Source of the DNA: Lepidodermella squamata
Taxonomy: Eukaryota; Animalia; Gastrotricha
DNA length: 64,000 nucleotides
NCBI GenBank assembly: GCA_047495785.1
Contig: JBLDXI010000004.1
Coordinates: 1,860,001 to 1,924,000, forward strand
Reading direction: 5' to 3'
The position numbers and the translations under genes are program-made. The notes below the pieces were generated by a model. It saw only the letters and a program-made list of their open reading frames with translations, searched no databases and was not told the origin of the DNA. Positions 234-61,268 of this stretch are shown in pieces (position 1 is the stretch's first letter; every line of letters starts with the position of its first letter).

Positions 234-1785
234 ATGTCAGTGCCGATGAATGCAAGCGTGCTGCAGGGCGGATCGTGGATAGTCGCCGATCTGCCAGACA
301 ATGGGTTTGATGGACCAAGGCCGTATTTCGTGGGGTGGGCGCATGATCTGAGAACTCGGTCAATGGCAGATCGCCTGCCTTATACGATCGTAAGCGGCGT
401 ATTATCAATTGTTGCCATTATCGCTAGCCTGGCGAATGTCGCCGTTTATTACCGGCGCAACGTGAATCGAGACTTTTTGCTACTGAACGGCATCGCCTCC
501 TTAAGGAACATATGCTATGTTGCAACCTGGATGGGTTCGTTGCTGGTAACTCTGGCAACAGGTTACTGGGAGGCGAGCGACGCCGCCTGCCAGCTCACTT
601 TTTGGCTCATTTCCTTCACCGGCAGTTACGGCTTGCTTCTCAATCTGCACATCAGCTACGAGCGACGTGTTTGCGTCACCTCGAGCAGCATACATCGATC
701 TAACCCTCTCAAGGTACCTATGAACTACTTAGTAAGATAAAGAAGGGCACACGCAGTATTAATTATCTAGCACTATGCAAGGGGAAGAAATTGAAACCCG
801 AAAAACAACCACAGGGAGCCCTTTGGTCTATAAATTGGGTAATAAAATACCCCATAGTTCGGGAATCCCATTCGGGAATTCCACCTTGGCCTGCCAAACT
901 GGGGAGTACGATAGCCCCATCCTACCCCGTATCTTAATTCGAAGAAATAATAGCCAGTTTCTCTCAATGAGACCTACGCCAATAAAAACGGCCCGTATCG
1001 GGTTTGTTGAGCAACTTCCTTTATTATCTGTTTGATTGTCTGTTTCTTGTCGTGCGTCTCCGATGTGGCAAGTCCTACACTGCCTTGAAGGAAACCTTGT
1101 CTACTAACTGTTGATGATATTTTCACACAGCTGGTTGTGAATGGTTGTGGTCGTGATGGCATCGGGGATGGCCATCTGTAGCGCGCTGTCTTGTGTCATC
1201 ATGTCCTTCGCCCCGTTTCCAGTGATGAGCGTTCAACAGCTGGGGCTAATGGACAGCAGCAGCAGCAGCAATACGAATCCTGTACGCATATGCGGGTTTT
1301 TCGTCAGCCGCCTCGCCGGACCAGTCGACAGCCTCATCGTCGGAGTAGGACTTTTCATGTTCTATTCCCAGGCAGCTTGCTCAGGCTTGGCGTACAACTA
1401 TTGGAAGGTTTTCAGAACTATTCGATCTGCTCGTTTGCGACTGCGAGGCATCACTTCAATGGAAGACAATTGGTACAAGAAGGAGACTTTCATCGCCAAA
1501 CAGTCGCTCGCTGCTTTCCTCGTCTACTTCGCGTGCCATGTGCCGCTGACAGCGCACTTTTTCATGTCTCTTTTCTACCGCGAAGTTGGCCCTAGCCACG
1601 CAAGTGGAGACCTGCTCAAGTACGGCCAAATCTGCTTATTACTTGAGATGGTTCTTTCGGTCTTCATTAGGACACTGAAGCCAGGATTCTACGATCGCTA
1701 TCCAGCAATGATCACCCGATTCGGCGCAACGTGTCGCGCAATCAGTCTGCTGAAAGCAGCTCGACTACGCATCAGCCCATCTTAA
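234..1785 (+). pseudogene. 7TM class A GPCR family paralog A; two exons; probable frameshift at the start of exon 2
   Basis: Exon 1 234-713 (donor AAG|gtacct), acceptor tttcacacag| at 1130. The homologous frame of exon 2 (1141-1785) is offset 10 nt from the acceptor by TGGTTGTG-AA-TGGTTGTG, with an in-frame TGA at 1138-1140. Motifs DNGFDGPRPYFVGW, ISYERR, AYNYWKVF, FIAKQS, LKPGF are present. The family's second intron is absent. Confidence 0.7.
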
Positions 1786-2769
1786 AATATCCACTTGAAT
1801 GAAAAATGAGCTCATATTATGAGCATTTCGATAAACTTCGTGCTGCACTGGAACATGTTCACGGTTTTCTGTTGACTGATTGATCGATAGACTGAATTAC
1901 AAAAATTCAAGTGCCAAATCAGAAATAATTTGTTTACTTAATAGGGTCGCCACTAAAATTCAAGCGAAATGGAATTAGATTAACCTATTCCCACCAGCGC
2001 AGTAATTTGTATTTGATAAATTTGTTGATGAAACGTCGGTAATCAATCTTTGCATTGCTTCGTCACAACATTCTGTACTTCATTTACATGCTTCCATTTG
2101 GTTCTGGTCATGATCCTCCAGAGCGGCATCAGTCGCCTGGTCGACATCCAGTTCTTCGCCGCTTCCGCCATCGTTGAGTCACTAGGACAAGTTTCTCGAG
2201 AATTTGCGACAAGGTTCACTCTTGAAATGGAGATCATTTTCCTGACCATTCTTAATCGATTAATCCTTAATCCAAACAGCAGGCGAGAATGTTCCTAGTT
2301 CCTAGATTTTTTACTATATTTTATGTACTTTCGCCCAAACTGTCGTTGACACCCTCGCTTTGCGCAAATTTTTCGCTGAAAATAGCTAAAAAGTTTACAC
2401 AGCATTTACGTGCTGCGGAAACTACTTTAGGAAATTCAAAAATCTGAACATGTCGATAGGCTCGAGGAATTTCTCACGATTCTCGAGCGGTTCCGAGTAT
2501 TAGAGTGTTGTAGTCCTAATAGCACAAATTTTTTAAATTAATGGCCTAGTTTTAATGTGAGACAATTCTTCCTAAAATATGACACTAACAACAAAATGTC
2601 TTAAATTTTCATCCGCTATTTTGACTTATCAAATTTCGATTTTAAATTTTATTTTTTCAAAAATTTTCTCACTCCTTTTTCTCGGGGAAAATTATCTAAA
2701 TATTTAAATAATATTCACAGCAACCTAAAAGCAAGGTACCAGGCACCCATAGGCCCCCATAGACGTAAA

Positions 2770-3085
2770 GACTTTCCTAATTTATGACGCTCGCTCGCTA
2801 GCCCTGTATGTTGAATCTGGTATAAAAGCGGCTGTTGTAAACGAGGGAATTTGTAGAGATCTTCTCACGATATTCTCCCCTCGAATTAATCGCTATAAAT
2901 GGCTAAAATGGGCAGTCTACTTTAAACAGCATTTAGGTGCTCCGGAGGAATAATAAGAATTAGCCATGTTTCGTTTTGTTCCCAAAGCAGCGAATCGTAA
3001 ACAATGTCTTAATTAATAACGCCCATACTAGGCCCTGCATGTTAAATCTGGTATCAACGCGGCTGTTGATGACGAGAGAAAATTT
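2770..3085. repeat. Diverged direct repeat, period about 230 bp
   Basis: gccctgtatgttgaatctggtataaaagcggctgttg (~2801) versus gccctgcatgttaaatctggtatcaacgcggctgttg (~3032); cagcattta.gtgct.cgga also occurs at ~2400 and ~2927. Confidence 0.6.
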
Positions 3086-3252: not shown

Positions 3253-3984
3253 CTGCTGATTCTCGCCGCCTGTTCGTTCGTCATTTGCGCAGTTGCTAAT
3301 GTAATATTTACGTTCGCACCGTTGCCGATAATGGCCCACCAGCGGCTGGTGGTCGACGGCATCAACAACAACACAGCCATCGACTTGTGCGGCGTGTTCC
3401 CGTATCGCTTCGTCGGCTCCTCGGACGTTCTCGTCCTGATACTCGTTGTTTTCTGCATCATCATCCAAGCAACAACGTTTGGTTTAGCTTTCAACTACTG
3501 GTAAGCAATTCCTGAGCAGTATTGTAAAGTGTAAATCTCATTTGTTAATCGAATATTCGGTTGAAGGAAACTGTTCTCTCTAATTCGGTCTGTTCGATTG
3601 GGCTGGCGTTCGAAGCTGCAATGTTCCGATCGAGAGGCGCTGTGGTATCAGCGCGAGTTGTTCTTCGCTAAACAATCTGTCGCTGCTGTCCTCGTGTACA
3701 ACGTGTGCCAACTGCCCATGGCTGTTCACATTGCTTTGCAGCTGGGCTACGCTGAGATTGGGCCTCGATTTGCGACAGGCGACTTGACCAAGTACAGCCA
3801 CGCGGTTATCATGTTCGAGATCGCAGCTTCAGCTATAGTTCGCATGCTAAAACCGTCGAACCGCGTGGCCATTGCAACGCCATTAAGTGCGACTAAAACA
3901 ATGGAAACAACGGGTGGCGCAAAGGATCGGCACAACACGAAGACTGTGACTTCGGTCAAAGTCATTCGGATTAGACCAAAGTAG
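3253..3984 (+). pseudogene. GPCR paralog B; 5'-truncated (exons 2 and 3 only)
   Basis: Exon 2 3253-3500 (tttcag|...TG|gtaagc), exon 3 3567-3984 (acceptor aag). Very similar to paralog I including intron 2. No exon-1 homology (DRGFNGSRPY...ERR) found between 1786 and 3252. Confidence 0.8.
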
Positions 3985-4528
3985 CAACAGCTTGCCAAAT
4001 GTTTTCGCTATTATTTTTGATGACTTGCAGAGACTTGTAGACTTGTATGCCTTGAAAAGTGATTTTCTGATTAAAACGAATAAGAAAATGGAAAATCCGC
4101 GCATACGCGTCATGTTCGTGTCGAAATTATAGCGGAGCGTAAAAGAATGCTTGTAAATTTATATTGGAAAATATTTTCAGTTCCAACATCAACAGCAACA
4201 GCGACATGATTAAATTATTTAATCTCGAATATCAAAGTAATTCAGCCCGGATGCAAATCAAAACTGTCATTTCTATCATTTTATCCTCAAGTTTGCCGGA
4301 TATGACTAGCGCCCATATGTTGTGCGTGCCCCTTGCTGTTTGATACAGTGTCAAAAAGACTTGTTAGTGTGAAATTCTTGGTTAGCAGGATACTTGAGTA
4401 GACAGGTGTCTAATTTGTATAGAATCATTTCCGAACGGAATCGACATGCTGAGAGCTTTCCGAACAGCCGATCCTCATTCACAGGTTCAATAATGATTTT
4501 TTCATTTCAGTGTGAAACAAACTGAAAA

Positions 4529-6025
4529 ATGACAAAAAATGTGTCTATCTTCACTGCGACGGCCTCTCTGATGCCATTCACGAGCTCGTGGATTCTGGCT
4601 GATTTGCCGGACCGCGGTTTCAATGGATCGAGGCCGTACTTTATCGGGTGGATGCACGACCTGAGCGCCACATCGATTGAGCAACGACTGCCCTACTCCC
4701 TGTCCGTTGTGATAATCGCAGTTCTCGGAAGTCTAGCCAGCATAGCAAATGTCGCAATCTACTACCGCCGCAATGTCAAACGCGATTTCCTCATGCTATG
4801 TTCAATTGTGGCAGTTAGAAACGTCGTGTGGTCTATCACGTGGTCCTTTGCAGTTCTAGTGCCATTGAAGACCGGCTTCTGGGAGGCAGAGCCCGCGGCT
4901 TGTGATGTTGTTTTCTGGATCATTGCAGGGCTGGGCGCTTTCGGTTGTTACGCGAACATGCTCATCAGCTACGAGAGACGGCAGTGTGTTTGCTCGATGG
5001 CCCTGTACCGACCGAGCTCATTGAAAGTAAGTAAACTATTATTTAGGTGTGGTTTTTATAATATTCGAAGAAATGAGATATCATCAAGGCGGGAAGTATA
5101 GGAAATTGGAAAGCTTCTGAGGAATTCCACAACCGGCTACAAATTCTTTTTTTTCAGCTCATGCTCCTCGCGGCTGGGTTCTTGCTATTCTGTTGCGGAT
5201 GGGCGGCAGTTTACACCTTTGCGCCGTACCAGTCGCTCACTGTCCAGCGATTAGTTATCAACGGCATCAACAACAACACGGCTGTCTCGCTATGTGGCTC
5301 GTTCGGTTATAGGTTCATCGGTGAATCGGACACTGTTGTGCTGATCATGGCGTACTATCTCTTTGCAGTGCAAGCATCTTCTCTCGGATTGGCTTACAAC
5401 TATTGGTGAGTTAACGCGTGAAGACCTTGGTAAAGACGTGTTACTTTTAATTGCAAACAAACGCGTTCACTCGAACTATTCTGAAAGCAAAATTTTGAAA
5501 AAAAGATCAAAAATTTGCGTTCACACCTTCAAGGTTCAAGGAATATTTCGCATGGTGAATGTATCACACGACCTAGTTTCAATGTTAACATATTTTCGCT
5601 TCAGGAGAATGTTCGCTCACATTAGAGCGGTTCGCCTCAGATGGCGCGATCAGGTGTCGAATACTCTTCAATCGAAAATCAGAGACAAGTGGCGACAGCG
5701 TGAAGTTTTCATCGCAAAACAGTCGATCGCTGCTTTCTTGGTGTACAGCGCATTCCATCTGCCGTTGGCTGTTCACTTCGCCCTTCAGCTAGGCTACGTT
5801 GAAATCGGGCCGCGATTTGCCTCTGGAATCCTCAACGAATGCGGCGCCATTTGCCTGCTTATCGAAATGGTTGTGTCTTCGGTGATCAAATCGGTGAAGC
5901 CAGGCTTCTCGCGCAACTTGCCGTGGTCACGTCGCAACAACCAGGTGACTGCCTCCGTCAAGACGCCATGTAGTAGTCCGTGTACCAATCGGAAATCACC
6001 GGCGACTATAAGAAAACTAATTTGA
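4529..6025 (+). CDS. GPCR paralog C, copy 1 (388 aa)
   Basis: Exons 4529-5026, 5158-5405, 5605-6025; GT-AG introns; open joined frame with seven hydrophobic segments and family motifs. Confidence 0.9.
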
Positions 6026-6934: not shown

Positions 6935-7127
6935 ATGAACAACAGCACGGTAGCGAGCGAAGCCACCAGCAGCAGCAGTCCTGCTGCTGGGCGGGGTCTG
7001 GATCGGGGCTGATATCGAAGACCGCGGCTTCAATGGCTCACCGCCGTACTTCATCGGCTACTTCCACGACCTGAGCAGACCCTCAATCGAAGGTCGACTG
7101 CCCTACACGCTGACCGCACAGCTGTAG
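6935..7127 (+). pseudogene. GPCR paralog D exon-1 fragment, copy 1
   Basis: ATG AAC AAC AGC (MNNST) is out of frame with AVLLLGGVWIGADIEDRGFNGSPPYFIGYFHDLSRPSIEGRLPYTLT; homology ends ~7115, stop at 7125-7127. Confidence 0.85.
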
Positions 7128-8330
7128 CTGCTTGACGAGCAAAAATAACCTGATAACGCTTAAGATGTCTTCGCGCTAAAAATCAGCCATCTTTAAACAA
7201 GGACAGCTGATTGTTCATTTCTACTATTTAACCCAAGTTTTTGATAGCATTCTCAGTCCTTCTCATTTCCAAGGTCAACTTCACTTGAATTAAACTGACA
7301 AATGCGGTACATTTTGAACAAATGAACAAATGAAATTGAAGGGACTATAAAAAATAAATACTAGAAATCGAAATGCTAAAAATCAAAATTAAACGAAAAT
7401 TAAGAATAATAAAAAACATGAATAATTTCCAGTTTTCCCACAAAGATCTATTTCTTGAAAACAGCCATTTGAAGCCCGGGATCATTGAAATAGCTGCTCA
7501 AATGAGTTAATTTTTGATTATTATTTTGACTAATTATTTTGATTATTTTGAAGTATTTTCATAATTTTCATAATTGATATATCAGCTTAGCGGCATCTTT
7601 GATCACTTGCCGAGCGGGGTTTTAACTCTATAACTGCCAAATATAGACTGCGAGATCCGATATTTGGATCCAAATCCCAAATCCTGGCTCTGTGAAAATT
7701 TCTTTTATTTCAGATCAGCGATGCTTCGTAGAGCAAATCGCCTGCCGGTAAAACAAAATAAAGGCCATTGCCCGGCGGTTTTGTTGACACCAATTTCGGG
7801 GCCAAAGCAGACATCAAGGAATGTACAGAAATCAACTTGAAAAACCAGTGATATTTCGATTGCTGCGCAATAATATGTGGGTCTAATTGCCATTCTTTGG
7901 TCTGATTTTTGGCTCTAGTCCAAAATTTTGACGTTATTTCACAGTCATTATCGAAGATTTGCTCAGACCGAATTTCGAATTTAGCAATGGCCCACACTAA
8001 TGCCCTACGAAGCATCGTTGATCCGAAATAAAAGACATCGTCATGGACGCCTAAGGGGAGCATGTTACTATACGCGATAAGCTAGATCTCGTGGCGAAAT
8101 CCGTTTTTCGAAATTCGATCTACAACATGTTGTATAAAGTTCCATCACAGGAGAGGAATTGTAGCGCACGCGAATGTTGAATTAAGTCCACAATAAAATG
8201 GACTTCAGACATCATGCGTTTGATCTGTTTTTGTTTTATCATTGCGAGTTTTCGGCATTTTACGCTTATACAGACTAAGATGAACAGCATTTACAGTGCA
8301 AAATTGGTGATATGATCCAACTTAAATGTA

Positions 8331-10497: not shown

Positions 10498-11701
10498 TTA
10501 AGTAGAAAAGTAATTTCAGACGCGAATTTGAGTTGGTGAGTTTTATCACCGTGCTTCTCTCGTTTCTAAAAGCTTCCTGTGTCAACTACTACTAATGTGT
10601 TCGATGCTAGCTGAATCTACTGGGATTGATGCCACTCAACTACGCACCCCGCTTCAGCGTGCGAAGTAGAACTTTTGAGCTAGGGATACTTCGGTCATTC
10701 CTTCAGCATATAGTCCAAAAAAATATCCGTACCGTACTCCCAGTCTCCCCGCTACTTCTCTCTCTGCCCCGCTTAGTTCCGTGCGAGGCGCTTGGGGTTT
10801 TCAGATACAAATCTGTATTTTTGCACTAATTCTTCACTGCTACGTCAAAATTTACTAGAACACATTCGGTTCAGTATATCTGATTCTAGTTAAATAAAAT
10901 AACAGAAGCAACAATTAGTCTGGCATCGAGTAATCTGAGATTTTCGCGATTTTTAACCACAAGAATATAGGAAGCTCAACAATTAAAGAGTTCTTTCACT
11001 TAGCTGACGCTCATCAGTGCTCCGAGTACGGGCGGTAAGGGGGGTAAACAAACCCGAAAATTTCTGAAAAACGTAAGGGTCCCCCCTTTTGATTTGCAAA
11101 TTTCGGGCTCAAAATGCTCGATTTACCCCCCTCAGAGCTGGACCTAGTCGGATCGCTGATGCTCATCAATCATCAATTCGAATCTTCATTTCGGCATGCC
11201 TTAGTGTCTGCGAGCAACTGGCGACGTGCTGTTCTTTCTTCGAAAGCGAGAGTGGATCGTCGTTTTCAGCTTCTCCAGGCAGTGGCAGCGCGATGGCGGC
11301 GGTCTCACTCAAATTCGCGCTCTGGAATTTGGATCGGATTCAGATCTGCTCGATTTCGCGGCATTTGAACAATTTAAATGGCATCAGGTTAGTGCTCCCA
11401 TTTCAACCTAAATGGATAAGCCTCTTCAACGACACTTCGGCGTCTTTCCTATCTTTTCACTTGGATGCAGTCTCCGCAGGTTTTAATTTTGAAAATTCAA
11501 AATTTTCCATGAAAAGTGGATGAGAATCAATAGTAAGAATCCGAGAATCGCCCTTTCAAATCAACCCACTTTTTGCTTTCCGCAGGAAAGGATTATACAA
11601 CATACGCCGCACTTCATAATAATTCAAAATCTGATCAAATCTGATTTTTCTGATCTAACTCTAACACCTTATTCTATCTGTCGCACAACTCAAAATAATT
11701 A

Positions 11702-11817
11702 CAGGGCGTTCGCGTAATAATACTCTGGGTGAGCTAAAAATAGCTACAAAAAAGCTCAAATGAATGCAAAAAGTAGCAAAGCTATTTTTAGAAGAGTATT
11801 ATTACGCGAACACCCTG
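11702..11817. mobile_element. Tc1/mariner-type MITE, 116 bp, copy 1
   Basis: TA|CAGGGCGTTCGCGTAATAATACTCT ... AGAGTATTATTACGCGAACACCCTG|TA: 25-bp TIR with one mismatch, TA flanks, internal inverted AAAAATAGCT/AGCTATTTTT. Confidence 0.85.
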
Positions 11818-13490
11818 TATATTGTATTAATTGGTTCGAAGTTAGCGGCCTGCGTGCCCTTTTGAAACCACGAATCTTTTGTATCGATTTTTTATACCTA
11901 AGAATATTTTTCGAAATAAAGATAATAATAATAATAATAATAATTTTCAAAAATGTTTGGATTCAAAGCCGCGAATAGTTTTTGATGGATTGTAGTATAA
12001 TAAGCGTACGTTTCAAGCGTTAAGCGATTTTATCGACATTCACAACAAACCAAGTCAACTTATGATGCATGAATCAGGTCACCTAATTCAAAAAGGAACA
12101 TGCAGCTGGTATTCTACATTAAAAATTCTACAATTCTAAAATAAAAAAATGAGCTTTTATATGAGGGCTCCATTCGATAGGTTGGCGTACACGCCCTCAT
12201 CGATTCACGACGTGACAAATGATCGCATTAGCCCTAAATGACAAACGATATTATTTGGGTCCAGGCCGGTAACCAAATTATTGCAAGTGATCTTACATAA
12301 GGCAGCGAAAGATGTCTTCGCACTCAGCCGGGGTAAAAGCTGACATCACATTTACAGCTGCTAAGCAACGCCCAACGCTACGGCGAGCGAACTCTTGCCG
12401 CAGAACTCGATATTGCTAAATATATCGAATACATCGCTCATTTAACGGCTACAGACAAAATCGCGACAGAACTGGAAAAACGCTGCCCAGCGTGGCATAT
12501 CAGACAGCTACTAAAGCCCGACTACCGCCTCCGATTCGACACCAGAGATTGGCTGATCATTGAATAAACGACATAAAAACGATCAAAACAAACACTAAAC
12601 ATCAACCATGATCTCTTGTTTATAAGCTTTACATTATACACACTGTCTACTTACACAAAAATTTTATATCTATGAAATGTTATTGTACCCCCTGAATCAT
12701 CGTGGCATCAAGTTATCGCGCCGAGAGCGCTGCGAGGCGTATGGCTGAAAAATAAAATCTCGATATGCCAAGCACTGGAGAGCGCGAGGAGCAAGGGGAG
12801 GGAAGGGGGGGGGGGGGAGCAGGCAAAAGCAGAAACGTCCTTATAAAACCACAGGGGGGACCCTTTGGTCGTAAAATTGGGCCCCGAAAATACCCCCTAG
12901 TTCGAGGATCCTACTTCGCGCACTGGCTTGACCTGAATGAAGCAAGAAAATAGCAACTTGGGCAATAAAACTGTAATAGCGCGGTGCGTGAATGTTTGTT
13001 TCGTGTATCTGAACTCGCCGCAGTCGATTTACTCATCTTCGACTCGTTCCGATTAGTAAATCCCGGCATTCCGTCAGATACAGACTTTTTTCGCGTTCAA
13101 TATCATGCAATTAGAATATTAACTTACGCCATTATCGTATTCCAGCTATATCATTCGGCGTTTGAATTATAGTTATAGTTATAATTTGCATAATTATAAT
13201 TTCCCTCGCAATTCCCCACAATTATAATTAGGTTATAATTAGCAAATAGTTGTAATTTGCTGTGAATCTAGCGGCTCTGCCCATTTATCGAAACTACTAT
13301 CTCTCGCCTACAATTACCGGATGACTCTAAAATTGTATATATATATCCGCCTATTCCTTCTACCTAATCTTGACTAATCTTGACTAACTATATCGGCAAT
13401 ATTAATAAAAATGTGAATAAAAATTACTCTGAGCATCACTCTGGAAAAAACTACCTCATTCTTCTAAAACGCCGCACGAACAACGTCACG

Positions 13491-13748
13491 ATGTACCAGG
13501 CTGTATCGGCCCAGTTGAAGCCAGCAGCTGCAGTCGTGTTGCCAGGCGGGGCTTGGATCTTGGATCTCAGCTGATATCGAGGACCGCGGCTTCAACGGCT
13601 CGAGGCCGTATCTCATCGGTTTTTATCACGACCTGAGCAGACAGTCGATCGGCGAACGGCTTCCCTACCCGCTGACCGTAGTCATACTGGCCGTGTTGGC
13701 GGTCGCAGCCAGCATCGCCAACTTAGCCGTCTATTACAGACGCGGGGT
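13491..13748 (+). pseudogene. GPCR paralog F exon-1 fragment, copy 1
   Basis: MYQAVSAQLKPAAAVVLPGGAWI, then a 7-bp duplication (cttggatcttggatct, 13552-13567) shifts the frame; homology resumes as ADIEDRGFNGSRPYLIGFYHDL...ASIANLAVYYRRG and stops ~13748. Confidence 0.85.
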
Positions 13749-15070
13749 AGCCTTCACGCGTTGGTTAGTTTACTAACTGACAGCCACTTGAGAGACATTT
13801 TCAGGTTCGGTCTCGGTATGCAAGTGGCCGTCATCTCTTGCCTTGTCGGGGCCCCTGTGCTTAAGATGTTCACAACATCGAACTAAATGGAGATGGGTGA
13901 GTGGAGGCAACACAGGACGGGAGCAATCCTATCTGACTCACCTTCCGGCGTTTCTACCTGTTCCTCACGTCTCAAGAGGAACAGTCCAACAACACGGCAG
14001 CCTGCAGAAATAGGTTTTGCATTCGTGAGTGAATTTTGGTATTCAAGGATGATAAGGATGATAAATAAGGACATTAGGCTGAGCCGCAGGAAAGACTAGT
14101 TTTGATTTCCAGATTGTTCTTGTGATGCAATTTTGGCGTCACTAATCACTATGCTTTGAAACACTGAATGAAATGCCACTACACCTTTCCTGTCCCAAAT
14201 CTCAACTTGTCCTGCAATTATATGCTGTTTTGCCTAACATTGTCAAGCTGCCCCCTGTTGGGCGTATGAGCTTTCAAATGAATAAATAAATAAACTACCA
14301 ATGAATCAAAATAATAAAACAGTTATGAAGGAATTTTCGCAGCATCATTTCTCGAAATGTTTATATACCAATTGTTACAGCAAATCAGCAAGGAATATCG
14401 GTAATTAAAAATTCGAAATGTGATTTTTCGAATCAAGTAGCAAAATAAGCTGGGAAATACAAATGCTGCGTTGAAAACGACCTTGATTAGGCTATCCCTT
14501 TTCCTGTACACGTCCTTTCACATCCGCTTGGAATCATGAGCTTGGATTTGCGGCTTGAGTTTACACGGGAGCCAGCAACGCCACACAACAAAAGGCGCAG
14601 TGATCATACGCTTATCGTTCTCGCATAGTGACGCCGAAATTGCGTCGCAATAAAAAATCTAACAATAGAGCAGCCCGCAGGAATAAGTCTTACTGGCTGA
14701 ATTTTTGTATTCGAGTATGGTGTGGTAAATGAGGACAGCAGGCGAAAAATGAGCCAGTTTTGCTGCAAGAACGACGAGTTTTGATTTTCTGATTTTTCTT
14801 GAGACGCAATTTAGGCGTCACAATGCGTGCATACCGAGAAAGAATGCATGACGCTCGTCCGGAGGGGCGGATGCCGCCCACGGGAAGCTTCCCGGCATTT
14901 CAAATAACGTACCAGCGGAGTTCAAAACATTAACCGGGAAAATGAGATGATGCATTAATTAATGTAAATCTCGGGAGGACAATCCGAGCGGAAACGTGGA
15001 GATGAAACGCTTCATCAAAAACACTCAGAAAATCATCTGTCTACAGCATTTTCACGCATCGCACTTCAAT

Positions 15071-47020: not shown

Positions 47021-48763
47021 ATGTCGAACGTCACGATGACAGCTTCTTTGATTCCGTTCACGAGATCGTGGATTCTTGCGGATTTACCCGACCGTGGCTT
47101 CAATGGTTCGCGGCCGTACTTTATCGGATGGCTGCACGACTTGAGCAGTCAATCGATTGAAGACCGTCTCCCGTACACCCTAGCCATCGTGATGATGAGC
47201 ATTCTTGGAAGTCTAGCCAGTTTGGCGAATATCGTAATCTACTACCGCCGCAACGTGAAACGAGACTTTTTAATGCTGTGCTCCATTGTGGCTGTTAGAA
47301 ACGTTGTGTGGTGTGCCAACTGGTCCTACGCCGTGTTGGTGCCTTTGCGAACTGGCTTCTGGGAGGCAGGCCCAGCAGAGTGCTCGGCTGCTTTCACAAT
47401 CCTGGCTGTCTTAGGCGGGTTCGGCTGTTTCGCAAACATGCTCATCAGCTACGAGAGACGGCTGTGTGTCTGCTCGATGTCCTTTCACCGGCCAAGCTCA
47501 GTAAAAGTAAGTCAAGGAATAAAAATTGTCCTCAGCTAGCTATCAAACGCACTGTTAAATGACGATTGACGTACAGCAAGACTATGTGGCATATTTTCAT
47601 ATTTTTTTTTTAAATGACGTATCATCTCGAGAAATTTCCTATACCGGAGCACATTAAGGTCCTAGATAAGCCGCTCTGCTACGCGGAACAATAATTTTGA
47701 CCTCCTGTGCATTTCCGGTTATGAAACTCAGCAAAAATAGTGTATATGTTTCCTTTCTATTATTCATACATCAATTCAAACATGGTTTAACATTAGGTAG
47801 ATGATAATGTAATTTCTAAAAATCCTATTCTAGCTCATGTCCCTCTCAGCTGGTCTCTTGCTGATCTGCTGCGGCGTCGCAGTGATTTTAAACTTCGCGC
47901 CATATCAATCGCAAGCCCTAGAACGATTGGTCATCGATGGCATCAACAACAATACCGCTGTGCCGTTGTGTGGCTCTTTCCAATACAGGTTCATCGGCGA
48001 GTCGGACACCGCAGTCCTCAATGTGGCGTACTTCTTCATCGCAGTGCAAACATCTTCCCTCGGATTGGCCTACAATTACTGGTGAGTCATTTCACTGGCA
48101 ACTGGTGAGCAAATCACTGCAACTTAGACGAATTATCTTTTGTTGGCCCGGTCCATAAATTTGGGCCGAATTAATGCACGATAGTTTATTAAGAAAATGA
48201 TATGTAGCCTCCAGCGTAGCACTCATATAGTCAAAGTTTCAAGTAGCTAACTGCACCTTCAGAATCTAGAAAGTAGAATTAGAATTAAGTCCTTTCCACA
48301 ATTGCCCTTCACGAAAAGGTTAAACTATGTAACACTGCATCGTGATTTTAGGAAGATGTTCGCCCAGATACGATCTGTTCGCCTCGGATGGCAAGATCAC
48401 CAGTCGAATGTTGAAAAGTCGAAAATCCAGGAAAACTGGCGGCAACGTGAAGTTTTCTTCGCCAAGCAGTCAATCGCTGCATTCGTGGCCTACAACGCAG
48501 CCCACCTACCGCTGGCTGTACATTTCGCCTTTCAGCTAGGCTACGTCGATCTCGGGCCGCGATTTGCCTCTGGCAACCTCATGAAGTACGGCATCGTGTG
48601 CGTGCTCATCGAGATGGTCGTGTCTTCGGTGATCAAATCGCTGAAGCCTGGCTTCACGCGCAACCTGCCGTGGTCGCGCCGAAACAACTTGGTGACTGTC
48701 CACGTGGTTCAAACTAGTCCGTGTATTACTCGCAAAACACCGACCATTGTAAAAAACTGTTGA
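47021..48763 (+). CDS. GPCR paralog G, copy 3
   Basis: Exons 47021-47506, 47834-48081, 48352-48763. Confidence 0.9.
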
Positions 48764-49936: not shown

Positions 49937-51419
49937 ATGACGAATGCTTCAGCGTCCTTGATCCCGTTCACAAGCTCGTGGATTCTCGCCGATTTGCCTG
50001 ACCGTGGCTTCAATGGCTCGAGGCCATACTTCATCGGCTGGTTCCACGACTTGAGCGCTCAATCGATCGAAGACCGGCTCCCGTACACGCTAACTGTTTT
50101 AATAATGGCGATTCTCGGAAGTCTGGCCAGCATCGCGAACGTCGTAATCTACCACCGCCGCAATGTTAAAAGAGACTTTCTGATGCTGTGCTCTCTGGTT
50201 GCGATTAGGAATGTTTTGTGGTGCGCAAACTGGTCCTACGCTGTGCTGGTACCTTTGAGGACCGGCTTCTGGGAGGCAGGCGCGGCAGCTTGCTCTGCTG
50301 TTTACTGGAACACGGCTACACTAGGCGGCTTGGGCTGTTTCGCGAACATGCTCATCAGTTACGAGAGGCGGCTGTGCGCATGCTCAACATCGATATACCG
50401 CTCAAGTGCATTGAAAGTAAGCTCATCAAACCATCTAGTTTTGCTAGACCGTTCGTTGTTTCTTTACGCGTTTAACAACCGAAATAACAGTCTGACTACG
50501 TCCCACGTAAGACTGTCTTCCTTACTACACTTCTAAATTGACATGATTTTGATAAAGAAAAGATCGTAGAGTAAAATTAGAGTTTATGTGTTTGCTGCAG
50601 TGTATAGTCCGAAAATTCTGGCTCACCCATAGATCGATACTAAACTTTAAACTTGATTGAACAGCTTCTTCTGCTAGCTGGTGGGTTCTTGTTACTATGC
50701 GGCGGCTGTGCGGTTGTATTCGTATTCGAGCCATACGAAGCGCTGTCCTATCAACGCCTAATCATCGATGGGATAGCGAACAACACGGCTGTGCCTTTAT
50801 GTGGGTCTTTCGAATACAAATTCATCGGCGAGGCAGATACTGTCGTGCTGATCATGGCGTACTACCTCTTCGCAGTTCAAGCTTCGTCTGTCGGCCTGGC
50901 CTACAACTACTGGTAGGTTTCGCAGTGTTGATATCAGTTTTCTATCAGCCGGTCGTAATTTACAGGAGAATGTTTGCCCAAATCCGAGCTGTGCGCTTGA
51001 GATGGCGAGAGACGTCGACTATCGAGGAGAAATGGCAAAAGCGTGAAGTTTTCATCGCCAAGCAGTCAATCGCTGCTTTCTTAGTGTACAACGCATTCCA
51101 CCTACCACTGGCTGTTCATTTCGCTCTTCAGCTAGGCTACGTCGATCTCGGGCCGCGATTCGCATCCGGCAACCTCATGAAGTACGGTCACGTGTGTTTG
51201 CTGGTCGAGATGGTCGTTTCATCAGTCATCAGATCGCTGAAGCCAGGCTTCACGCGCAGTTTGCTGTGTCTTGGCTACTCCCGTCGCGTCAAAATTGCGC
51301 CGTCCAGTGGCAATAACAGTAGCACTGGTCAGACCGCAGCGGCGGTGGTTCAGGCACACGCTACCCGTGAACAGGATTGGTTTAAAAGGATCAAAGTGCT
51401 GATATTCGGTCGAAAGTGA
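49937..51419 (+). CDS. GPCR paralog H, copy 3
   Basis: Exons 49937-50416, 50665-50912, 50966-51419. Confidence 0.9.
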
Positions 51420-52188: not shown

Positions 52189-53539
52189 ATGAACGGGAGC
52201 ACACTTCATCCGGCAGCTCAATCGAAGCCGGCAGTAGCAGTTTTGCTGCCAGGCGGAGCTTGGATTGCGGCCGATATCGCAGACCGCGGCTTCAACGGCT
52301 CGCGGCCGTACCTCGTCGGCTTTTTCCACGACTTGAGCAGGCCCTCGATCGAAGATCGACTGCCGTATACACTGACCATAGTCATAGTTGCTGTCTTAGC
52401 GATCGCAGCCAGCATCGCTAACTTGGTGGTCTACTACAAACGCGGCGTCAACAGCAGTTTCATCATGCTGTGCTGCTTAATCGCCTTTCGCAATATTATC
52501 TGCGCCCTGAATTGTTGCATCAGCTTGCTGATCACTCTGCCAACAGGCTACTGGGAAGCCAGCCCGGCATCTTGTTCCATCGTATTCTGGATAACAGGCA
52601 CGGTCGGGGCTTTCGGTAGTTTTGTCAACTGTCTCATCAGCTACGAACGGCGTCTCTGTGTCACTTCAACCAGCATGTATCGGACCAGCTCCACCAAAGT
52701 AAGAATAATCCAAACAGCGGTCGACGGGTCTATTGAGCTAGATGTCTTCGAAATAGATTTTTCCGACTTCGTGTGTCCCCCTTTTAATCGAGTATCATCA
52801 TAAATGTGCATTCTTTTCAGCTTTTGATTCTGGCCGCCGGCTCTTTCGTCTTTTGCGGAATTTGTTTTGGACTATTCACGTTCGCACCGTTGCCGATAAT
52901 GGCCCACCAGCGGCTGGTGGTCGATGGCATCAACAACAACACAGCCATCGATTTGTGCGGCGTGTTCCCGTACCGCTTCGTCGGCTCCTCTGATACTAGC
53001 GTCCTACTGCTTATTGTTTTTTTTATTGTCATCCAAGCGACAACTTTTGGTTTAGCCCTCAACTACTGGTAAGCACTTCCCCAGCAGTTTTGAGATTCTC
53101 ATTTGTTCATCGAATATTCGATTGCAGGAAAGTGTTCTCTCAAATTCGGTCTGTTCGTTTGGGCTGGCGTTCGAAGCTGCAAGGTTCCGATCGAGAGGCG
53201 CTGTGGTATCAGCGCGAGTTGTTCTTCGCTAAACAATCCGTCGCAGCTGTCCTCGTGTACAACGTGTGCCAATTGCCGATGGCTGTTCATCTGGCGATGC
53301 AGATTGGCTATGCAGAAATCGGACCTCGTTTCCTGACCGGCGACTACACCAAGTACGGCCATGCAGTTATCTTGTTCGAGATCGCAGCTTCAGCTGTCGT
53401 CCGTAGTTTGAAACCGTCGAATCGCGTCACAGTTGTTATGCCTCCAAGTGCGAACCGTACAACGAAAACAGTAGTTGACACTCAAGATGATCGGCAGAAT
53501 ACAACAACTTTCAATTTGACCAAGGTTTTAAAGCGGTGA
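52189..53539 (+). CDS. GPCR paralog I, copy 2
   Basis: Exons 52189-52698, 52821-53068, 53128-53539; one visible substitution versus copy 1 (CISFLI to CISLLI). Confidence 0.9.
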
Positions 53540-54216: not shown

Positions 54217-56283
54217 ATGTCGAACATCACAATAGCGGCGGCGTCTCTGATGCCATTTACAAGCTCTTGGCTTCTTGCTGATCTGCCCGACCGCGGTTTC
54301 AATGGCTCGAGGCCGTATTTCATCGGCTGGCTGCACGACCTGAGCGCCCAATCAATCGAAGACCGACTGCCATACACGCTAACTATAGTGATTCTGGCGA
54401 TTCTTAGTAGCCTAGCCAGTATTGCTAACATCGTAATCTACTACCGCCGCAATGTTAAACGAGACTTTTTGATACTGTCCTCTTTTGTGGTTGTTAGAAA
54501 CGTCCTGTGGTGTGCCAACTGGTGCTACGTTGTGCTGGTGCCGCTGAGAACTGGCTTCTGGGAGGCAGGTCCAGCTGCGTGCTCCACAGCTTTCACGATA
54601 ATGGCTGTCTTAGGCGGGTTCGGCTGTTTCGCAAACATGCTCATCAGCTACGAGAGACGGCTGTGCGTTTGCTCCGTGTCTCTTCACCGGCCAAGCTCAG
54701 TAAAAGTAAGTCAACGAATGAAAATCATCCTCTGTTATCGAGCGTTCAGCAGGACTATTTTGCATATTTGCATAATTTTTATCCCCAACACGTTAAGGAT
54801 AGGCCGCTCTGCTATGCAGAACAACAATTATGACAAGTATGATTCCAGTGGATTTCCGCCAGTGACTTTGATTTGATTTGATTGGATTTATTGAGGAAAT
54901 CACAGGTCTCTGTAAATCAATCATTTCAAGTCAAATCCCAAAAAGTCGATAGTAAATCAATCAAATCAAATCATCAAGCCCGTTTAAATCAAATCAAATC
55001 AAATCTTTCGCATATGGAAACATGAGTATCATGGTAAATTTCTGGGGGTTCTTTCAAATTTCAAGCTTGGTTTTGGTTGAATGAGTATGAAAGGGGATGA
55101 ATAGCTCCGGGCTTTAGAAAACAGCTGTTTTCAAGGCAAATGTAAGTTCTCATGTTTAGTAACAGGGGGAGATCCGAGAGTTCTGATTTGTATAAATTAG
55201 CAGTAAATCAAGTGGGCTGAATTTAAATCAAATCAAATCATCCTGAAACTTTCTAAATCAAATCATCAAAAAATGGCCTAAATCAAATCAAATCACAATC
55301 AAATCAAATCAAATCAAAGTCTCTGATTTCCGCATTTAAAGTTCATAAAGTAATGCAAAATTTTATAAAATTATTGAAATGGGTAAACGTTAACATTTCA
55401 ATCGTATGCTATTCTAGCTCATGTCCCTCTCAGCTGGTCTCTTGCTGATCTGCTGCGGAATTGCAGTGATTCTCAACTTCGCGCCATATCAATCGCAAGC
55501 CCTCGAACGGTTGGTCATCGACGGCATCAACAACAATACCGCTGTGCCGCTGTGTGGCTCCTTCAACAACAGGTTTATCGGTGATGCAGACACGGCAGTC
55601 CTCAATGTGGCGTACTTTTTCATCGCAGTGCAAACATCTTCCCTCGGATTGGCTTACAACTACTGGTCAGTCATTTCACTATCAAAGTTGACGGATTGTT
55701 TTTTTATTGGCCCGGCCCTTGAATTTGGATCGAATTTCGAAGAATTTATAAAGGATCAGCTATTTAACGTTTCCCGCGTACAGTTAAATCTTCCAGTAGC
55801 TACCCGCCTTCACTCTCAGAACAATAATGCAGTAGAATTTAGTCTATGCGTGTTTTTAGGAAGATGTTTGCTCATATACGAGCTGTTCGTCTCGGATGGC
55901 AAGATAACCAATCGAATACCTTAAAATCGAAAATCCAAGAGAACTGGCGGCAGCGTGAAGTTTTCATCGCCAAGCAGTCAATCGCTGCATTCGTGGTGTA
56001 CAATGCGTTCCATCTCCCGTTGGCTGTTCATTTCGCCCTTCAGATAGGCTACGTCGATCTCGGGCCGCGATTCGCCTCTGGCAACTTCATGAAGTTCGGC
56101 ATCATGTGCGAGCTTTTCGAAATAGTCGTTTCGTCGGTTATCAAATCGCTGAAGCCTGGCTTCACGCGCAACCTGCCGTGGTCGCGCCGCAATAATAAAG
56201 TGAATGCTCTAGCCACGGTCCGTGTGCTCGTCGCAAATCGCCAGCCGCCACCCGTCAGCAACTGTGAAAAATTAAGATTTTGA
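54217..56283 (+). CDS. GPCR paralog J, copy 2
   Basis: Exons 54217-54705, 55418-55665, 55860-56283 (offset 23711). Confidence 0.88.
54860..55325. mobile_element. hAT-type MITE in intron 1 of J copy 2
   Basis: Same TIRs and ATTTCCGC TSD as 31149-31614. Confidence 0.9.
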
Positions 56284-56790: not shown

Positions 56791-58044
56791 ATGCCGCACA
56801 ATAATTCAACGTCGGCTATTGTGATGCCAGGTGGCGGCTGGGTAATGGCGTACATCGAAGATCGCGGCTTCGACAGCCCGAGGCCGTACTTCATCGGTTG
56901 GTTCCACGATTTGAGCACGAAATCAGTCGCAGATCGACTGGCATACACAGTGGCTATAGTAGCCATCTGCATCCTCGGAACCATCGCCAGCGTAGCCAAC
57001 ATCGTGGTTTACTACCGCAGAAACGTCAAACGAAATTTCTTGGTCCTGAACGGGCTTCTCGTCGCAAGAAATGTCATCTGGGCTATCAATTGGTCATGCG
57101 CAATGCTTGCCACCCTGCAGACTGGCTATTGGGACGTTGGACCGGCAGCGTGTGCCGTAGTTTGGTGGATCGCAACAGCTATCGGTCCATTCGGCTGTTT
57201 TCTCAATCTCATCATTAGTTACGAACGAAGAATGTGCGTTAGCTCGAAGACTCTCTACCGATCGAGCAGCCGCAAGGTAATAGGCGACTCGATTCCGAGT
57301 CAGTAGTATTGCAGCTTTCTAGTGAAATTTCATTGGATTATTTTGAAATCAAGAAACTAAAGGTTTACTTAATTTTTCAGCTGATTTTGATGACTCTGGG
57401 CTGTTTCGTCTTCTGCGCGGTTTGCACGAGCACCTATGTGATTGCCCCTCTTAAAGCGTATGGCTATCAGCAACTCGTGATTGGAAACCAATCGACCCCA
57501 GCTGTTGGACTATGCGGTTCATTCGACTACAAATTGGTGGGAGATGCTGATACACTGGTTATTGTCCTCATCTACCTTTTGTTCGCTGTTAATGTGTCAT
57601 CGATCGGCCTAGCTTTCAACTACTGGTTAGATATTTGTAACCGTCACGTTTTCCGGTTTGTCATTCCTATTTTGTATATACAGGAAAATGTTTTCGCAAG
57701 TCAGGGCGATTCGGTTGGCTTGGAGATCGCAAGGAACCGGCGGAACGTCGCCTATGCGGAATGACTGGCGGAAGCGAGAGGTTTTCATCGCGAAACAGTC
57801 CATTGTCGGCGTTGTGCTGTACACTGCCTTTCATATGCCTCTCGCTATTAGTGTCATTCTGCAGCTTGGCTACACTAGTATTGGGCCGCAGTACGCCAGC
57901 GCGAATCTCAACAAATATTCGAGCGTTTGTGCAGCGCTGGAAATGGTTGTCTCCTCGATCGTCAAGTCACTAAAGCCGGGATTCACAATGACGCAAGTGT
58001 TAGCACGGAGAAATACAACCAAAGTTGAAGCTAGTGGACTCTAG
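56791..58044 (+). CDS. GPCR paralog K, copy 2
   Basis: Exons 56791-57276, 57381-57625, 57684-58044; FTITQ to FTMTQ versus copy 1. Confidence 0.9.
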
Positions 58045-58346: not shown

Positions 58347-59662
58347 ATGAACGATACGCTCGAGGTTCGAGCATCGGCTCAGTCGAAGCCAGCAGCAATA
58401 TTGCTGCCAGGCGGAGCTTGGATCTCGGCCGATATCGAAGACCGTGGCTTCAATGGCTCGCGACCGTACTTCATCGGTTGGTTCCACGACCTGAGCAGGC
58501 CCTCAATCGAAGATCGACTGCCGTATACGTTGTCTATTGTCATACTAGCCGTTATCGGGATCGCAGCCAGCATTGCTAACATAGTGGTCTACCACAGGCG
58601 CAGAGTTGGTAGCAGTTTTATCATCTTATGCTGCATGGTCACTGTTCGCAACATCATCTGCGCCGTGAATTGCTGCGTCAGTATGCTAGTCACTTTACCA
58701 ACTGGTTACTGGGAAGCCGGCCCAACTGCTTGTTCGATCGTGTTCTGGATATCAGGCGCAGTCGGAGCTTTCGGCTGTTTCGTCAACTTTCTCATCAGCT
58801 GTGAACGGCGCCTTTGCGTTACTTCGACTATCGTGTATCAAACCAGCTCCACCAAAGTAAGTTCAAGCCATAAATCATACATGTTCGCAATGATGAAAAT
58901 ATGTCTCAAGATATTGCTTCTAGCTTCGGGTTCGTTTGTCTTTTGCGCCGTTTCAACTATCATATTTTCCTTCACCCCCTTGCCGCTCATGGTGCACCAG
59001 CGGCTGGTCGTCGAAGGTATCAACAACAACACAGCCATCGATCTGTGCGGGTGGTTCCCGTACCGCTTTGTCGGTTCTTCCGATTCAATCGTCCTAGTTC
59101 TAATTTTCTACCTGGTAATTGTCCAAACCACAACGTTTGGCTTGGCTCTGAATTATTGGTGAGCTTGTCGTAGAAAACTTAACCATTCCAAGTAAAATTC
59201 TGATTACTATAAAGGAAAATATTCTCAGAGATTCGCTTGGTCCGGCTTCGTTGGCGCTCGCAACAAATCGGGGCTCCAACAACGGATCGGGAAGCGCAGT
59301 GGTACCAGCGCGAGTTGTTCATCGCCAAACAGTCAATTGCTGCTGTTCTCGTGTACAACGTGTTCCAAATGCCGCTTGCTGTTCACATTGCCATGCAGAT
59401 GGGCTACGCTGAGATCGGGCCTCGATTTGCGACCGGCGACTTCAACAAGTACAGCCAAGTGTGTGTCATGATTGAAATAACTGCATCGGCCATAGTTCGC
59501 ATGCTGAAACCCAGGCTATCAACAAATCGCGTCAGCAATGATAGTAAACTCGCTCTCAACGGGAATCATCGAAAGACGCATCGACAAGGGCGGGCAAGCG
59601 CGATTCTGCGGCAAATTTCACGATGGATTCGAAACATTGACCCGGCTGTAATTTATCAGTGA
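58347..59662 (+). CDS. GPCR paralog L, parental form (401 aa)
   Basis: Exons 58347-58856, 58911-59158, 59215-59662; own TM7 and C-tail (SQVCVMIEITAS...PAVIYQ); AATAAA just after the stop. Confidence 0.85.
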
Positions 59663-60478
59663 TTGAGAATAAAAGCGGAATGAAGTTTCATACATGTATA
59701 TCAGGCATATCGCATATCCTAATTACATCCTAGAAGCTGTGAAAAGAAACGGTCGATATCAATGTTAGCTGTGCGACTCAAGCTCGGAAGCCGGAAATTG
59801 CTGTAGCAGGAAGCTATCTAACGAAGCTGTCGGGGATCCTGCAGGGTTTTCGTATTTCTTTGTACATGCTTTGTATATAAATCGTGATATGTGATAGATA
59901 GAAAAATCAGCCACTAGGTTTCAGTCTTGCTTATCATGAGGCGGCTATCTAGCTACTTCAACTTCGCAAAAGGTACGCTTGCACTACCGCGCAATATCCG
60001 AACAACTGGTCATGATAACAGCACTCGCTGAAAACCGCCTGCAGTATATCCGCCTGATCTCGAAATTTTGAAATGACGTAATTTTGGGCTGTTGGGCGGC
60101 GGTTAGATCAAGGCTGGGACACATCAAAGACAGCGGTTTCGACGCTCCCAGGCGCTAGGTCATAATTTCTTGAGGCCGTCGCCGCCATTGCCGACATTAC
60201 TATGCTCTGCGTGATGTCCTTAGGGTAATAGCTGGCCATGTGCCAGCATGAGCCAATTCCTTACATCCTATATGTCATTTTGTCAATTTGTCAACGCACC
60301 AATGATTCATCGACCACCAGAATTGTACGTTCTGCTGATGTGCTCACAGATCGATAATTTCAAGAAACGGAGGTATTTTCACGAAGGCGTTGAAAGCTTC
60401 CGTTCTGCTGAGATATATGCAGTGAGAGGTGGCATCGCTATTCGCATTCTCAATAATTTTTTTTCAAGACAAAGGGGA

Positions 60479-61268
60479 ATGAACGACACACTAAAAGCTC
60501 AGTCGAAGCCAACAGCAGTTGCGCTGCCAGGCGGGGCTTGGATCTCGGCCGATATCGAAGACCGTGGCTTCAACGGCTCGCGGCCGTACTTCATCGGCTG
60601 GTTCCACGACCGGGGTGAACAACAATTCCGCCGTGCCATTGTGCGGCTCATTCAACTACAAATTCATTCGATCTTCAGACACAACAGTGGCTATTCTGCT
60701 GTACTACCTAGTGGTGGTTCAACTGTCCTCTTGCGGCCTCTCCTACAACTACTGGTTTGTCACTTCGTACTTTGATAGTTGTTTTTTTTCATTCGATCTA
60801 TGCAGGAAAATTTTCGCTCAAATTCGGGCTGTTCGCCTTGGATGGCGGTCGACGCAGCGTAGCATGCAGGCCGTGGCCATGGAGACTCAGTGGCGGCAGC
60901 GGGAAGTGTTTTTTGCGAAGCAATCTATAGCCGCTGTGCTCGTGTACAACACATTCCACCTGCCCATGGCCGTGCATTTAGTGTTCCAGCTCGACTACTG
61001 GAACTGGGGCCCGAGCTTCGCTAGCGGTGACCTGCTCAAGTACAGCAACATTTGCACAGTTGCAGAAATGGTCTTCTCGTGCTTTGTCAAAATGGTGAAA
61101 CCCGGATTCTCGCAGCGAATGCCTTCCATCGGAAGGAAGCTTCTGCAGCATCGGGGTCTTCGACAGCGACCGACTCGGATTAGCGTGGCTAGCACCAATA
61201 AGGCAGCAGCAGCTACGGCTACATTTGCCGTAACAACTCGAGAGTCCTTGAATACCAGCAATTATTGA
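60479..61268 (+). pseudogene. GPCR paralog M; deletion/fusion pseudogene
   Basis: MNDTLKAQSKP...GWFHD (L-like exon 1) is joined out of frame at ~60610 to GVNNNSAVPLCG (mid exon 2, E-like), so TM1-TM4 are missing; intron 60755-60805; exon 3 60806-61268. Confidence 0.85.

Follow-up and report, generated by a model that had tools for sequence, protein, structure and literature searches.

What kind of receptor is encoded by the tandem array in a 64-kb genomic stretch from the gastrotrich Lepidodermella squamata (hereafter the window), and what might such receptors detect? Our preferred reading, to which we give a probability of about one half, is that an old and unnamed class A subfamily was expanded in tandem and then doubled by block duplication, with the detection of environmental or pheromonal chemicals as its most likely role. 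A literature search found no paper on molecular chemoreception in gastrotrichs, and the large lophotrochozoan survey omits them; because gastrotrich chemoreception is undescribed at the molecular level, the eight receptor genes described here are testable candidates.

Locus inventory and probable recent block duplications

Tblastn searches of the 64-kb window with exon peptides located 26 loci at 234-61268, 18 intact and eight broken (L1, L2, two copies of B, three of D, and K), and GT-AG splicing gave 18 models, each with three exons and an open frame of 363-401 aa. Both approaches bear out the counts of a first-pass annotation (26 loci, 18 intact, 8 dead, 13 distinct paralogs). Because half of the loci stem from near-identical block duplications, the 18 intact models collapse to eight genes, with 11 different protein sequences, and the distinct loci number 13 (8 intact genes and 5 dead). 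Intron 1 (phase 0, where ICL2 ends) and intron 2 (phase 2, within a Trp codon after TM5) are common to the models, and splicing confirmed these shared positions, which had been noted earlier, except in L1, which lacks intron 2. Exon 2, previously described as fixed at 248 nt, has this length in 16 of the 18 intact models, with 245 nt in I1 and I2. Comparison with Rfam returned zero matches.

All loci lie on the plus strand except C1 and C2. L1 (234-1785; exons 234-713 and 1131-1785) is the most divergent paralogue and died recently; a short tandem duplication where exon 2 begins has shifted its frame, and it contains no other stops. An intact reading of L1 was rejected, as an in-frame stop immediately precedes 1141 and an in-frame acceptor is lacking; segment 1141-1782 matches 7tm_1 at E 6e-5. 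L2 (3253-3984; exons 3253-3500 and 3567-3984) is 5′-truncated and G-like, and no remnant of exon 1 was found upstream. B1 (6935-7118; J/G-like) and D1 (13491-13749; G/J-like) are dead 5′ fragments with frameshifts, copied as B2 (38881-39064) and as D2 (21741-21999) and D3 (45441-45699). K (60479-61268) is a dead, out-of-frame fusion missing TM1-TM4, in which a J-like N-terminus (92% nucleotide identity to J2) runs into the stretch of a C-like gene that covers ECL2-TM7.

The intact genes comprise A1 (4529-6025, 388 aa; exons 4529-5026, 5158-5405 and 5605-6025), C1 (9184-10497, minus strand, 395 aa; exons 10497-9988, 9925-9678 and 9613-9184), E1 (15071-16813, 381 aa), F1 (17987-19469, 393 aa), G1 (28480-29830, 389 aa), H1 (30506-32572, 386 aa), I1 (33080-34333, 363 aa) and the non-hybrid J2 (58347-59662, 401 aa), together with J1 (34636-35930, 394 aa), an intact hybrid that follows J to mid-TM7 and L2 thereafter. 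The coding sequences of A2 (36475-37971), C2 (41130-42443, minus strand), E2 (23312-25054), E3 (47021-48763), F2 (26228-27710), F3 (49937-51419) and H2 (54217-56283) are identical to those of A1, C1, E1, F1 and H1, respectively by letter; G2 (52189-53539) and I2 (56791-58044) each differ by one amino acid from G1 and I1.

Blocks of 24-32 kb are duplicated at ~99.8% identity in an a-b-b-c-a-b-c layout, and two very recent block duplications, the source of 13 of the 26 loci, would have doubled an older array of eight working and five dead loci. The junction (b/b′) of the 8.2-kb tandem duplication lies at 19588-19592, with 5 extra bases between arms 11347-19587 and 19593-27828. The crossover of the large duplication maps to 35735-35746, 12 bases identical between J2 and L2 in a locally 83% identical region, and the switch falls inside an exon. 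Unequal crossover between paralogous exons probably produced one block duplication together with the hybrid receptor J1, an event of which the array would be a snapshot. The birth and death of genes in a tandem array, as first proposed, stands, but array size and pace of turnover had been overstated, the paralogues being old and the block copies recent.

It is unlikely that assembly or amplification falsely doubled the array from 13 to 26 loci, an error that would bear on copy number only and not on the family. The block copies are 99.8% identical, with most coding copies free of any difference, and the published L. squamata assembly derives from multiple-displacement-amplified DNA, which is prone to chimeras (PMC11660948); however, at the large junction the sequence changes cleanly, within 12 identical bases, from one 83%-identical paralogue to the other, the small junction carries its 5 added bases, and an assembler would presumably need spanning reads to join on such a short overlap. 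The copies also differ by 0.05-0.1%, a 9-nt indel included, and the assembly was published with 83x coverage and without any detected chimeric contig (PMC11660948). Because this divergence greatly exceeds the published consensus error of 1.6e-6 and falls far short of the heterozygosity of about 3% (PMC11660948), the copies are not errors, and a reading as two alleles is ruled out by their similarity. From their sequences, the block duplications look real.

Class A features and an altered core

Judged by sequence features, the proteins are divergent class A (rhodopsin-like) GPCRs of an unnamed branch, and the original class A assignment holds. They show seven hydropathy peaks, basic intracellular loops (positive-inside) and conserved sequons in the N-terminus and ECL2. 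Matches to 7tm_1 are collinear and weak (E 6e-5 for TM4-7 and 0.01-0.05 for the TM1-3 exons, all below the cut-off), and collinear profile matches span TM2-TM7 with exact C3.25 to R3.50 spacing. C3.25, the ECL2 Cys, ERR (a DRY variant), Y5.58 and P6.50 are invariant, and E6.30 is also kept; of the hallmarks first listed, the TM3 Cys, the ERR of ISYERR, the ECL2 Cys, the TM5 Tyr and the TM6 Pro are constant across the family. The TM1 Asn, listed with them, is invariant as well, but its position is probably 1.53, with Ser at 1.50. A PDB search with the exon-1 profile returned mainly class A receptors (EP4 at E 0.003, FFA4 and muscarinic), exons 2 and 3 searched against PDB sequences produced no significant match, and the named Atlas neighbours are all in the GPCR_A clan. 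Exon-wise structure predictions from single sequences and shallow alignments were too weak to establish the fold (pLDDT 49 and 66), and fold searches returned generic helical bundles.

The sole match among 1.84 billion representatives was a distant relative, P0001 (L001), on an ENA metagenome contig from sample SAMN13674978, which scores 32.2 bits against 7tm_1 (cut-off 30.5) and E 2e-13 against the family HMM and is placed, with a very long branch, outside all of the window's paralogues. Like the array, P0001 has the N-terminal W-x-x-A-x-x-x-D-R-G, N2.50, I-S-x-E-R-R, ECL2 C-G-x-F-x-Y-R-F, R-E-x-x-x-A-K, a helix 8 P-G-aromatic motif and the phase-2 intron in the Trp codon after TM5, but it is only ~26-29% identical, lacks intron 1 and has a long ICL3, and it is more canonical in keeping N1.50, S3.39, N7.45 and P7.50. 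Because this relative with the same intron 2 occurs in another organism, the term lineage-specific, applied in the first-pass annotation, needs care. Queries of 5.8 billion proteins with the J1 exon 1-2 read-through and the C-terminal half, in searches that detect only proteins of similar length sharing short words, gave no match; a homologue search from P0001, with the same restriction, yielded no further relative, and two scans of metagenomes for patterns from exons 1 and 3 yielded none. That the array encodes some other seven-helix membrane protein family resembling GPCRs by chance is highly improbable: every exon in the window falls short of the Pfam cut-off and fold searches gave no significant GPCR match, but the TM2-TM7 collinearity, the exact TM3 spacing and the bridging P0001, above the 7tm_1 cut-off, argue against it.

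Several residues that are common in class A, though not obligatory (N1.50, D2.50, W4.50, P5.50, W6.48 and NPxxY), are replaced: the array has S1.50, N2.50, S/T5.50 and H/Q6.48, a TM4 core devoid of Trp, and S-S/A-x-x-K/R at 7.49-7.53 in place of NPxxY, with K/R7.53 replacing Tyr. The core further contains R2.49-N2.50, G3.39, an invariant N3.43, E7.45 and TM7 E-M-x-x-S. With D2.50, W4.50, P5.50, W6.48 and NPxxY gone, these receptors may not activate in the normal way. The G-protein face is the best conserved region (ICL3 and the start of TM6 are 76% identical between deep clades), and the retained R3.50, Y5.58, E6.30, K6.35, P6.50 and basic ICL3 suggest that the receptors would signal through G proteins. 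The Arg2.49-Glu7.45 pair is predicted to substitute for the usual sodium site.

Since none of the sodium site, the hydrophobic lock at 3.43 and NPxxY is retained, these could instead be receptors with atypical switching, whether constitutively active, G-protein-independent or ligand-scavenging. N3.43 is invariant here versus a hydrophobic 3.43 in 96% of class A, and L3.43N favours active CysLTR2 (10.1101/663153); N2.50, G3.39, H/Q6.48 and K/R7.53 in place of Tyr point the same way. We consider such switching decidedly improbable, given that R3.50, Y5.58, E6.30 and K6.35 are kept on the cytoplasmic face and that the motifs replaced here are missing from many divergent invertebrate receptors (PMC3261222, Table 3). 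A bolder claim, that this is the first chemoreceptor family of Gastrotricha and has an activation core that differs from those of described class A receptors, in which the Arg2.49-Glu7.45 ion pair, with support from N1.53, N2.50, N3.43 and H/Q6.48, replaces sodium and NPxxY and a conserved N-terminal hairpin caps the pocket, appears quite unlikely; if true, a built-in ion pair in place of allosteric sodium could be suited to fresh water with few ions. The polar substitutions that are invariant at the sodium-site positions amount to a natural experiment on how class A receptors activate.

Chemical detection or internal signalling

Purifying selection is strong on the eight intact paralogues, which are old: they show 43-84% protein identity, dN/dS of about 0.14 (range 0.09-0.22) and dS mostly >1. 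Extracellular parts are the most conserved (dN/dS 0.12; 17 of 38 N-terminal residues invariant), and dN/dS is 0.20 in the pocket versus 0.14 elsewhere. Pocket variability exceeds that of other TM positions (P 0.001) and is a trend against outer-half positions, the strict control (P 0.06-0.10). Positive selection was rejected, no region or site class lying above dN/dS 0.2, a comparison in which dS saturation limits power. Positions 3.32, 3.33, 3.37, 7.39 and 7.42 vary among paralogues, with differences in chemistry at 3.32 and 7.39.

The preferred reading predicts that an old class A subfamily expanded in tandem to give eight working paralogues and five dead loci, that the proteins reach the cell surface, as the conserved N-glycosylation sites of their N-terminus and ECL2 suggest, and that small ligands bind in the TM3/5/6/7 pocket beneath a conserved N-terminal and ECL2 cover, with the five variable positions setting differences in tuning. 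The even odds that we give a chemosensory role follow from genome layout, tandem clusters with pseudogenes being typical of chemoreceptors (PMC11526382, PMC11886862). Against such a role, the family is small here (8 genes) and its extracellular parts are the most conserved. It is possible, though clearly less probable, that the same receptors respond to cues from within the body, whether peptide, lipid, amine-like or related to host defence, and do so in the gonad, gut, epidermis or nervous system; ordinary drift of a gene family, with subfunctionalisation, would then account for the cluster. Planarian members of "chemoreceptor-like" lineage-specific families have functions in the gonad niche or show expression in testes and epithelia (PMC4862687). 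An internal role would also fit how strongly the N-terminus, ECL2 and ECL3 are conserved, the uniform purifying selection, the nearest solved structures, which are, weakly, lipid and peptide receptors, and the retention of a relative in a distant organism. However, dosage-sensitive endocrine receptors do not usually show such dead loci (5 of the 13 here) and such an unstable copy number, and the chemistry of ligand-contact positions 3.32 and 7.39 varies among paralogues.

Comparison with known receptor systems

Comparison with opsin, amine, OR, Sr and PROF1 receptors upheld the initial impression that the array belongs to no named family. Opsins were rejected by the lack of K7.43 (L, V, A or M at 7.43; the conserved TM7 Lys is at 7.36), aminergic receptors and TAARs by the lack of D3.32 (I, T, L, M, A or S), and vertebrate-type ORs by the absence of a 7tm_4 match, the two introns and E values of 0.11 and 1.8 for consensus OR structures. 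For nematode Sr/Srw receptors, no 7TM_GPCR_Sr* profile matched with an E limit of 1, or of 10 for exon 2. Nematode Sr families and srw resemble the array in introns, clusters, birth-and-death and a divergent class A-related 7TM fold, but the best Pfam model for the array is 7tm_1. The Atlas neighbours include Srw/Srx clusters, which have no discriminating power.

Flatworms are the sister phylum of gastrotrichs. Their PROF1/Srfb, Rho-L, -R and -D receptors are, like the array, highly diverged rhodopsin-like orphans with remnants of classical motifs (PMC3261222, PMC4862687), and no flatworm protein matched in the large searches. PROF1 genes are intronless, with a TM3 D-R/K/S motif and TM7 N/S-F/G-x-x-Y/F (PMC3261222); the array has introns, ERR and TM7 E-M-x-x-S and falls outside this definition. 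Aplysia AcCRa-c, which gave no sequence match to the array, are also rhodopsin-like, clustered and devoid of close orthologues elsewhere (PMC2700072), but are mostly single-exon and shown in sensory organs, whereas the array's genes have three exons.

Class A lineage-specific expansions are documented across 238 lophotrochozoan genomes, with Gastrotricha unsampled (2025, PMC11886862). By analogy, the array is an expansion of a well-described kind, already known in many invertebrates, and would not surprise a specialist in GPCR evolution, related phyla having hundreds of such expansions per genome. Both consist of tandem class A paralogues with full-length, truncated and pseudogene members and are candidate chemoreceptors on genomic grounds only. 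One-to-one orthologues are lacking for the lophotrochozoan expansions, and for the array the protein searches gave the single distant match P0001. The lophotrochozoan expansions generally keep DRY and NPxxY and have heterogeneous extracellular loops (PMC11886862), whereas the array has lost NPxxY and conserves its N-terminus and ECL2.

Structure and probable duplication history of the array

Six-frame ORF searches and tblastn with exon peptides located 26 loci of a single family between 234 and 61268, of which 18 can be spliced at GT-AG sites into open three-exon models of 363–401 residues. Intron 1 (phase 0) lies at the end of ICL2, and intron 2 (phase 2) interrupts a Trp codon following TM5. 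The eight dead loci are L1, which loses its frame where exon 2 begins, through a short tandem duplication, with no stops in the remainder; L2, in which exon 1 is absent; B (two copies) and D (three copies), which are 5′ fragments with frameshifts; and K, formed by a C-like end joined out of frame to a J-like start. Because tblastn and splicing return these same numbers, the locus counts of the first-pass annotation are correct. The exon 2 length of 248 nt that it described as fixed is 245 nt in I1 and I2 and holds in the other intact models, while the intron positions are shared as it had proposed, except that L1 has no intron 2. Pyrimidine-AG acceptor-like sites are found 8–25 nt upstream of the start codon in A (4529), F (17987), G (28480), I (33080) and L1 (234); these could be 5′ UTR introns or spliced-leader acceptors.

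Self-comparison of the window gives the layout L1 and L2, then blocks a b b c a b c, then K, each block being ~8 kb and its copies 99.8% identical. Coding sequences of the A, C, E, F and H copies show no differences, those of G and of I each differ by one base, and the array encodes 11 different proteins. Given this near identity of both blocks and coding copies, the array represents only 13 independent loci doubled by two recent events; the 13 distinct paralogs counted previously thus survive as loci, eight intact and five dead. The large duplication joint falls within exon 3 of the hybrid copy J1 (34636–35930, forward strand), where all informative sites resemble the non-hybrid J2 (58347–59662, forward strand) up to 35734 and L2 from 35747. 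Since this switch is confined to 12 bases shared by two paralogues whose local identity is 83%, the joint carries the signature of an unequal crossover yielding an intact hybrid. The b/b junction contains five additional bases. Copies of block a differ by 7 substitutions per 7.6 kb, those of block c by 6 substitutions and one indel per 7.9 kb, and those of block b by a few indels, one of 9 nt. Five of the seven substitutions separating a from its copy a′ sit within 300 nt of the crossover (3904–4028 versus 35850–35974), a cluster suggestive of a stretch of allelic origin or of repair errors introduced at the breakpoint.

The published assembly (122.8 Mb, 157 contigs, 43.3% GC, compared with 42–49% in the window) was built from multiple-displacement-amplified DNA (PMC11660948), and a chimeric origin of the duplications must therefore be weighed. 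Chimeric contigs were not detected at the published coverage of 83x (PMC11660948), however, and the differences among copies are far above the published error rate and far below the published heterozygosity of 3%, so that we regard the block duplications as likely to be real.

Several further elements are present in the window. A small TA-flanked element with 27-nt terminal inverted repeats (11698–11821, with copies in b′ and b″) resembles a Tc1/mariner-type MITE, and 43-nt inverted repeats spaced by 265 nt (7693–8043, copied in a′), which adjoin the end of fragment B, are possibly another small mobile element. Short non-coding stretches at 765–930 (L1 intron 1) and 12845–12915 (block b) appear similar by eye, a similarity that masked blastn did not confirm, and are possibly ends of a dispersed repeat. 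The right-hand limit of the array is marked by an ankyrin-repeat open frame on the reverse strand (62537–63403; Ank_2 E 4e-43), built of 99-nt units in tandem, which is probably the final exon of a larger gene.

Class A identity and an altered receptor core

Database searches and folds were run per exon or on natural open frames, with spliced models used for local counts and trees only. Hydropathy averaged over the family shows seven peaks, the loops on the intracellular side are basic, and the N-terminus and ECL2 keep N-glycosylation sequons. Pfam 7tm_1 was the best-matching profile, weak but correctly ordered across separately searched exons (E 6e-5 for TM4–7, 0.01–0.05 for TM1–3); the nematode Sr families, put forward earlier for the same comparison, were not matched at E up to 1. 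PDB matches of the exon-1 profile are mostly class A receptors (best EP4, E 0.003), and for each protein half, all Atlas neighbours that carry a name belong to the GPCR_A clan. Single-exon structure predictions were weak, and fold searches with them gave no informative matches. Among 1.84 billion representatives searched with the profile, a single match emerged, P0001 (E 1e-8), a protein encoded on a 1.9-kb contig from a metagenome assembly in ENA. P0001 clears the 7tm_1 cut-off and aligns with all three family exons, and a 55-nt intron interrupts its gene at precisely the same position and in the same phase as intron 2. This relative connects the family with class A, and its existence means that the family predates Lepidodermella squamata. 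Together these observations bear out the original class A assignment, and it is highly improbable that the array proteins are not GPCRs. The receptor gene on the metagenome contig (L001, 454–1877) is a two-exon class A gene of a small-intron eukaryote, split in two by gene callers, with a long, serine-rich ICL3 and truncated at the contig end.

Numbering was anchored on C3.25/R3.50, Y5.58 and P6.50 and on the P0001 and EP4 alignments. Cytoplasmic switch residues are retained (ERR, Y5.58, E6.30, K6.35 and P6.50), and the core is altered (S1.50, N1.53, R2.49, N2.50, G3.39, N3.43, H/Q6.48 and E7.45), with NPxxY absent. The TM1 Asn formerly cited as a class A hallmark is indeed invariant but is probably at 1.53, since in both alignments the canonical Asn falls on an invariant Ser; alternatively, it may occupy 1.50 with a short ICL1. 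Positions 2.49, 3.39, 6.48 and 7.45 line the allosteric sodium site (PMC6037435), and we infer that sodium may be replaced by an Arg2.49–Glu7.45 pair. In 96% of class A receptors a hydrophobic residue occupies position 3.43, and Asn at this position in CysLTR2 favours the active state (10.1101/663153). The best-conserved protein segment is an extracellular N-terminal motif (A1 residues 21–45, exon 1, in all paralogues), partly common to P0001 and predicted with low confidence to form a β-hairpin, which could act as a lid over the pocket.

Selection, proposed role and comparison with known expansions

The eight intact paralogues share 43–84% identity, their dS ranges from 0.5 up to saturation, and their dN/dS is 0.09–0.22; they are old and conserved and are not diverging fast, and the rapid turnover ascribed to the family does not extend to paralogue divergence. 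A tree groups C with K, E with H (and A), and G with L2 and J. Regional dN/dS is 0.20 for the pocket, 0.14 for other TM positions, 0.12 for extracellular and 0.14 for intracellular positions. The pocket has more different residues per position than other TM positions (P 0.001), an excess that is marginal against other outer-half positions (P 0.06–0.10), and variation is greatest at 3.32 and 7.39. This variability hints at differing ligand tuning and is not evidence of positive selection.

We favour, with a probability of about 0.5, a role for the array proteins as receptors that would sit at the surface, sense external chemicals and signal via G proteins, a small, old repertoire persisting while unequal crossover would alter its copy number. 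A response to internal signals is a weaker though serious contender, given that some receptors of planarian lineage-specific families belong to the gonad or to epithelia (PMC4862687); an atypical or constitutively active kind of receptor is unlikely.

Motif positions place the family outside the opsins and amine receptors, and the family likewise lacks the defining features of vertebrate ORs, nematode Sr families and flatworm PROF1, in agreement with the earlier statement that it fits no named family. A literature search found no paper on gastrotrich GPCRs. The array is real and the family unnamed, but the expansion suspected of being undescribed is of a kind already known: class A lineage-specific expansions were first demonstrated in Aplysia (PMC2700072) and have been catalogued across 238 lophotrochozoan genomes (PMC11886862), and the gastrotrich array would work alike, sharing their tandem layout and their mix of full-length, truncated and dead copies.
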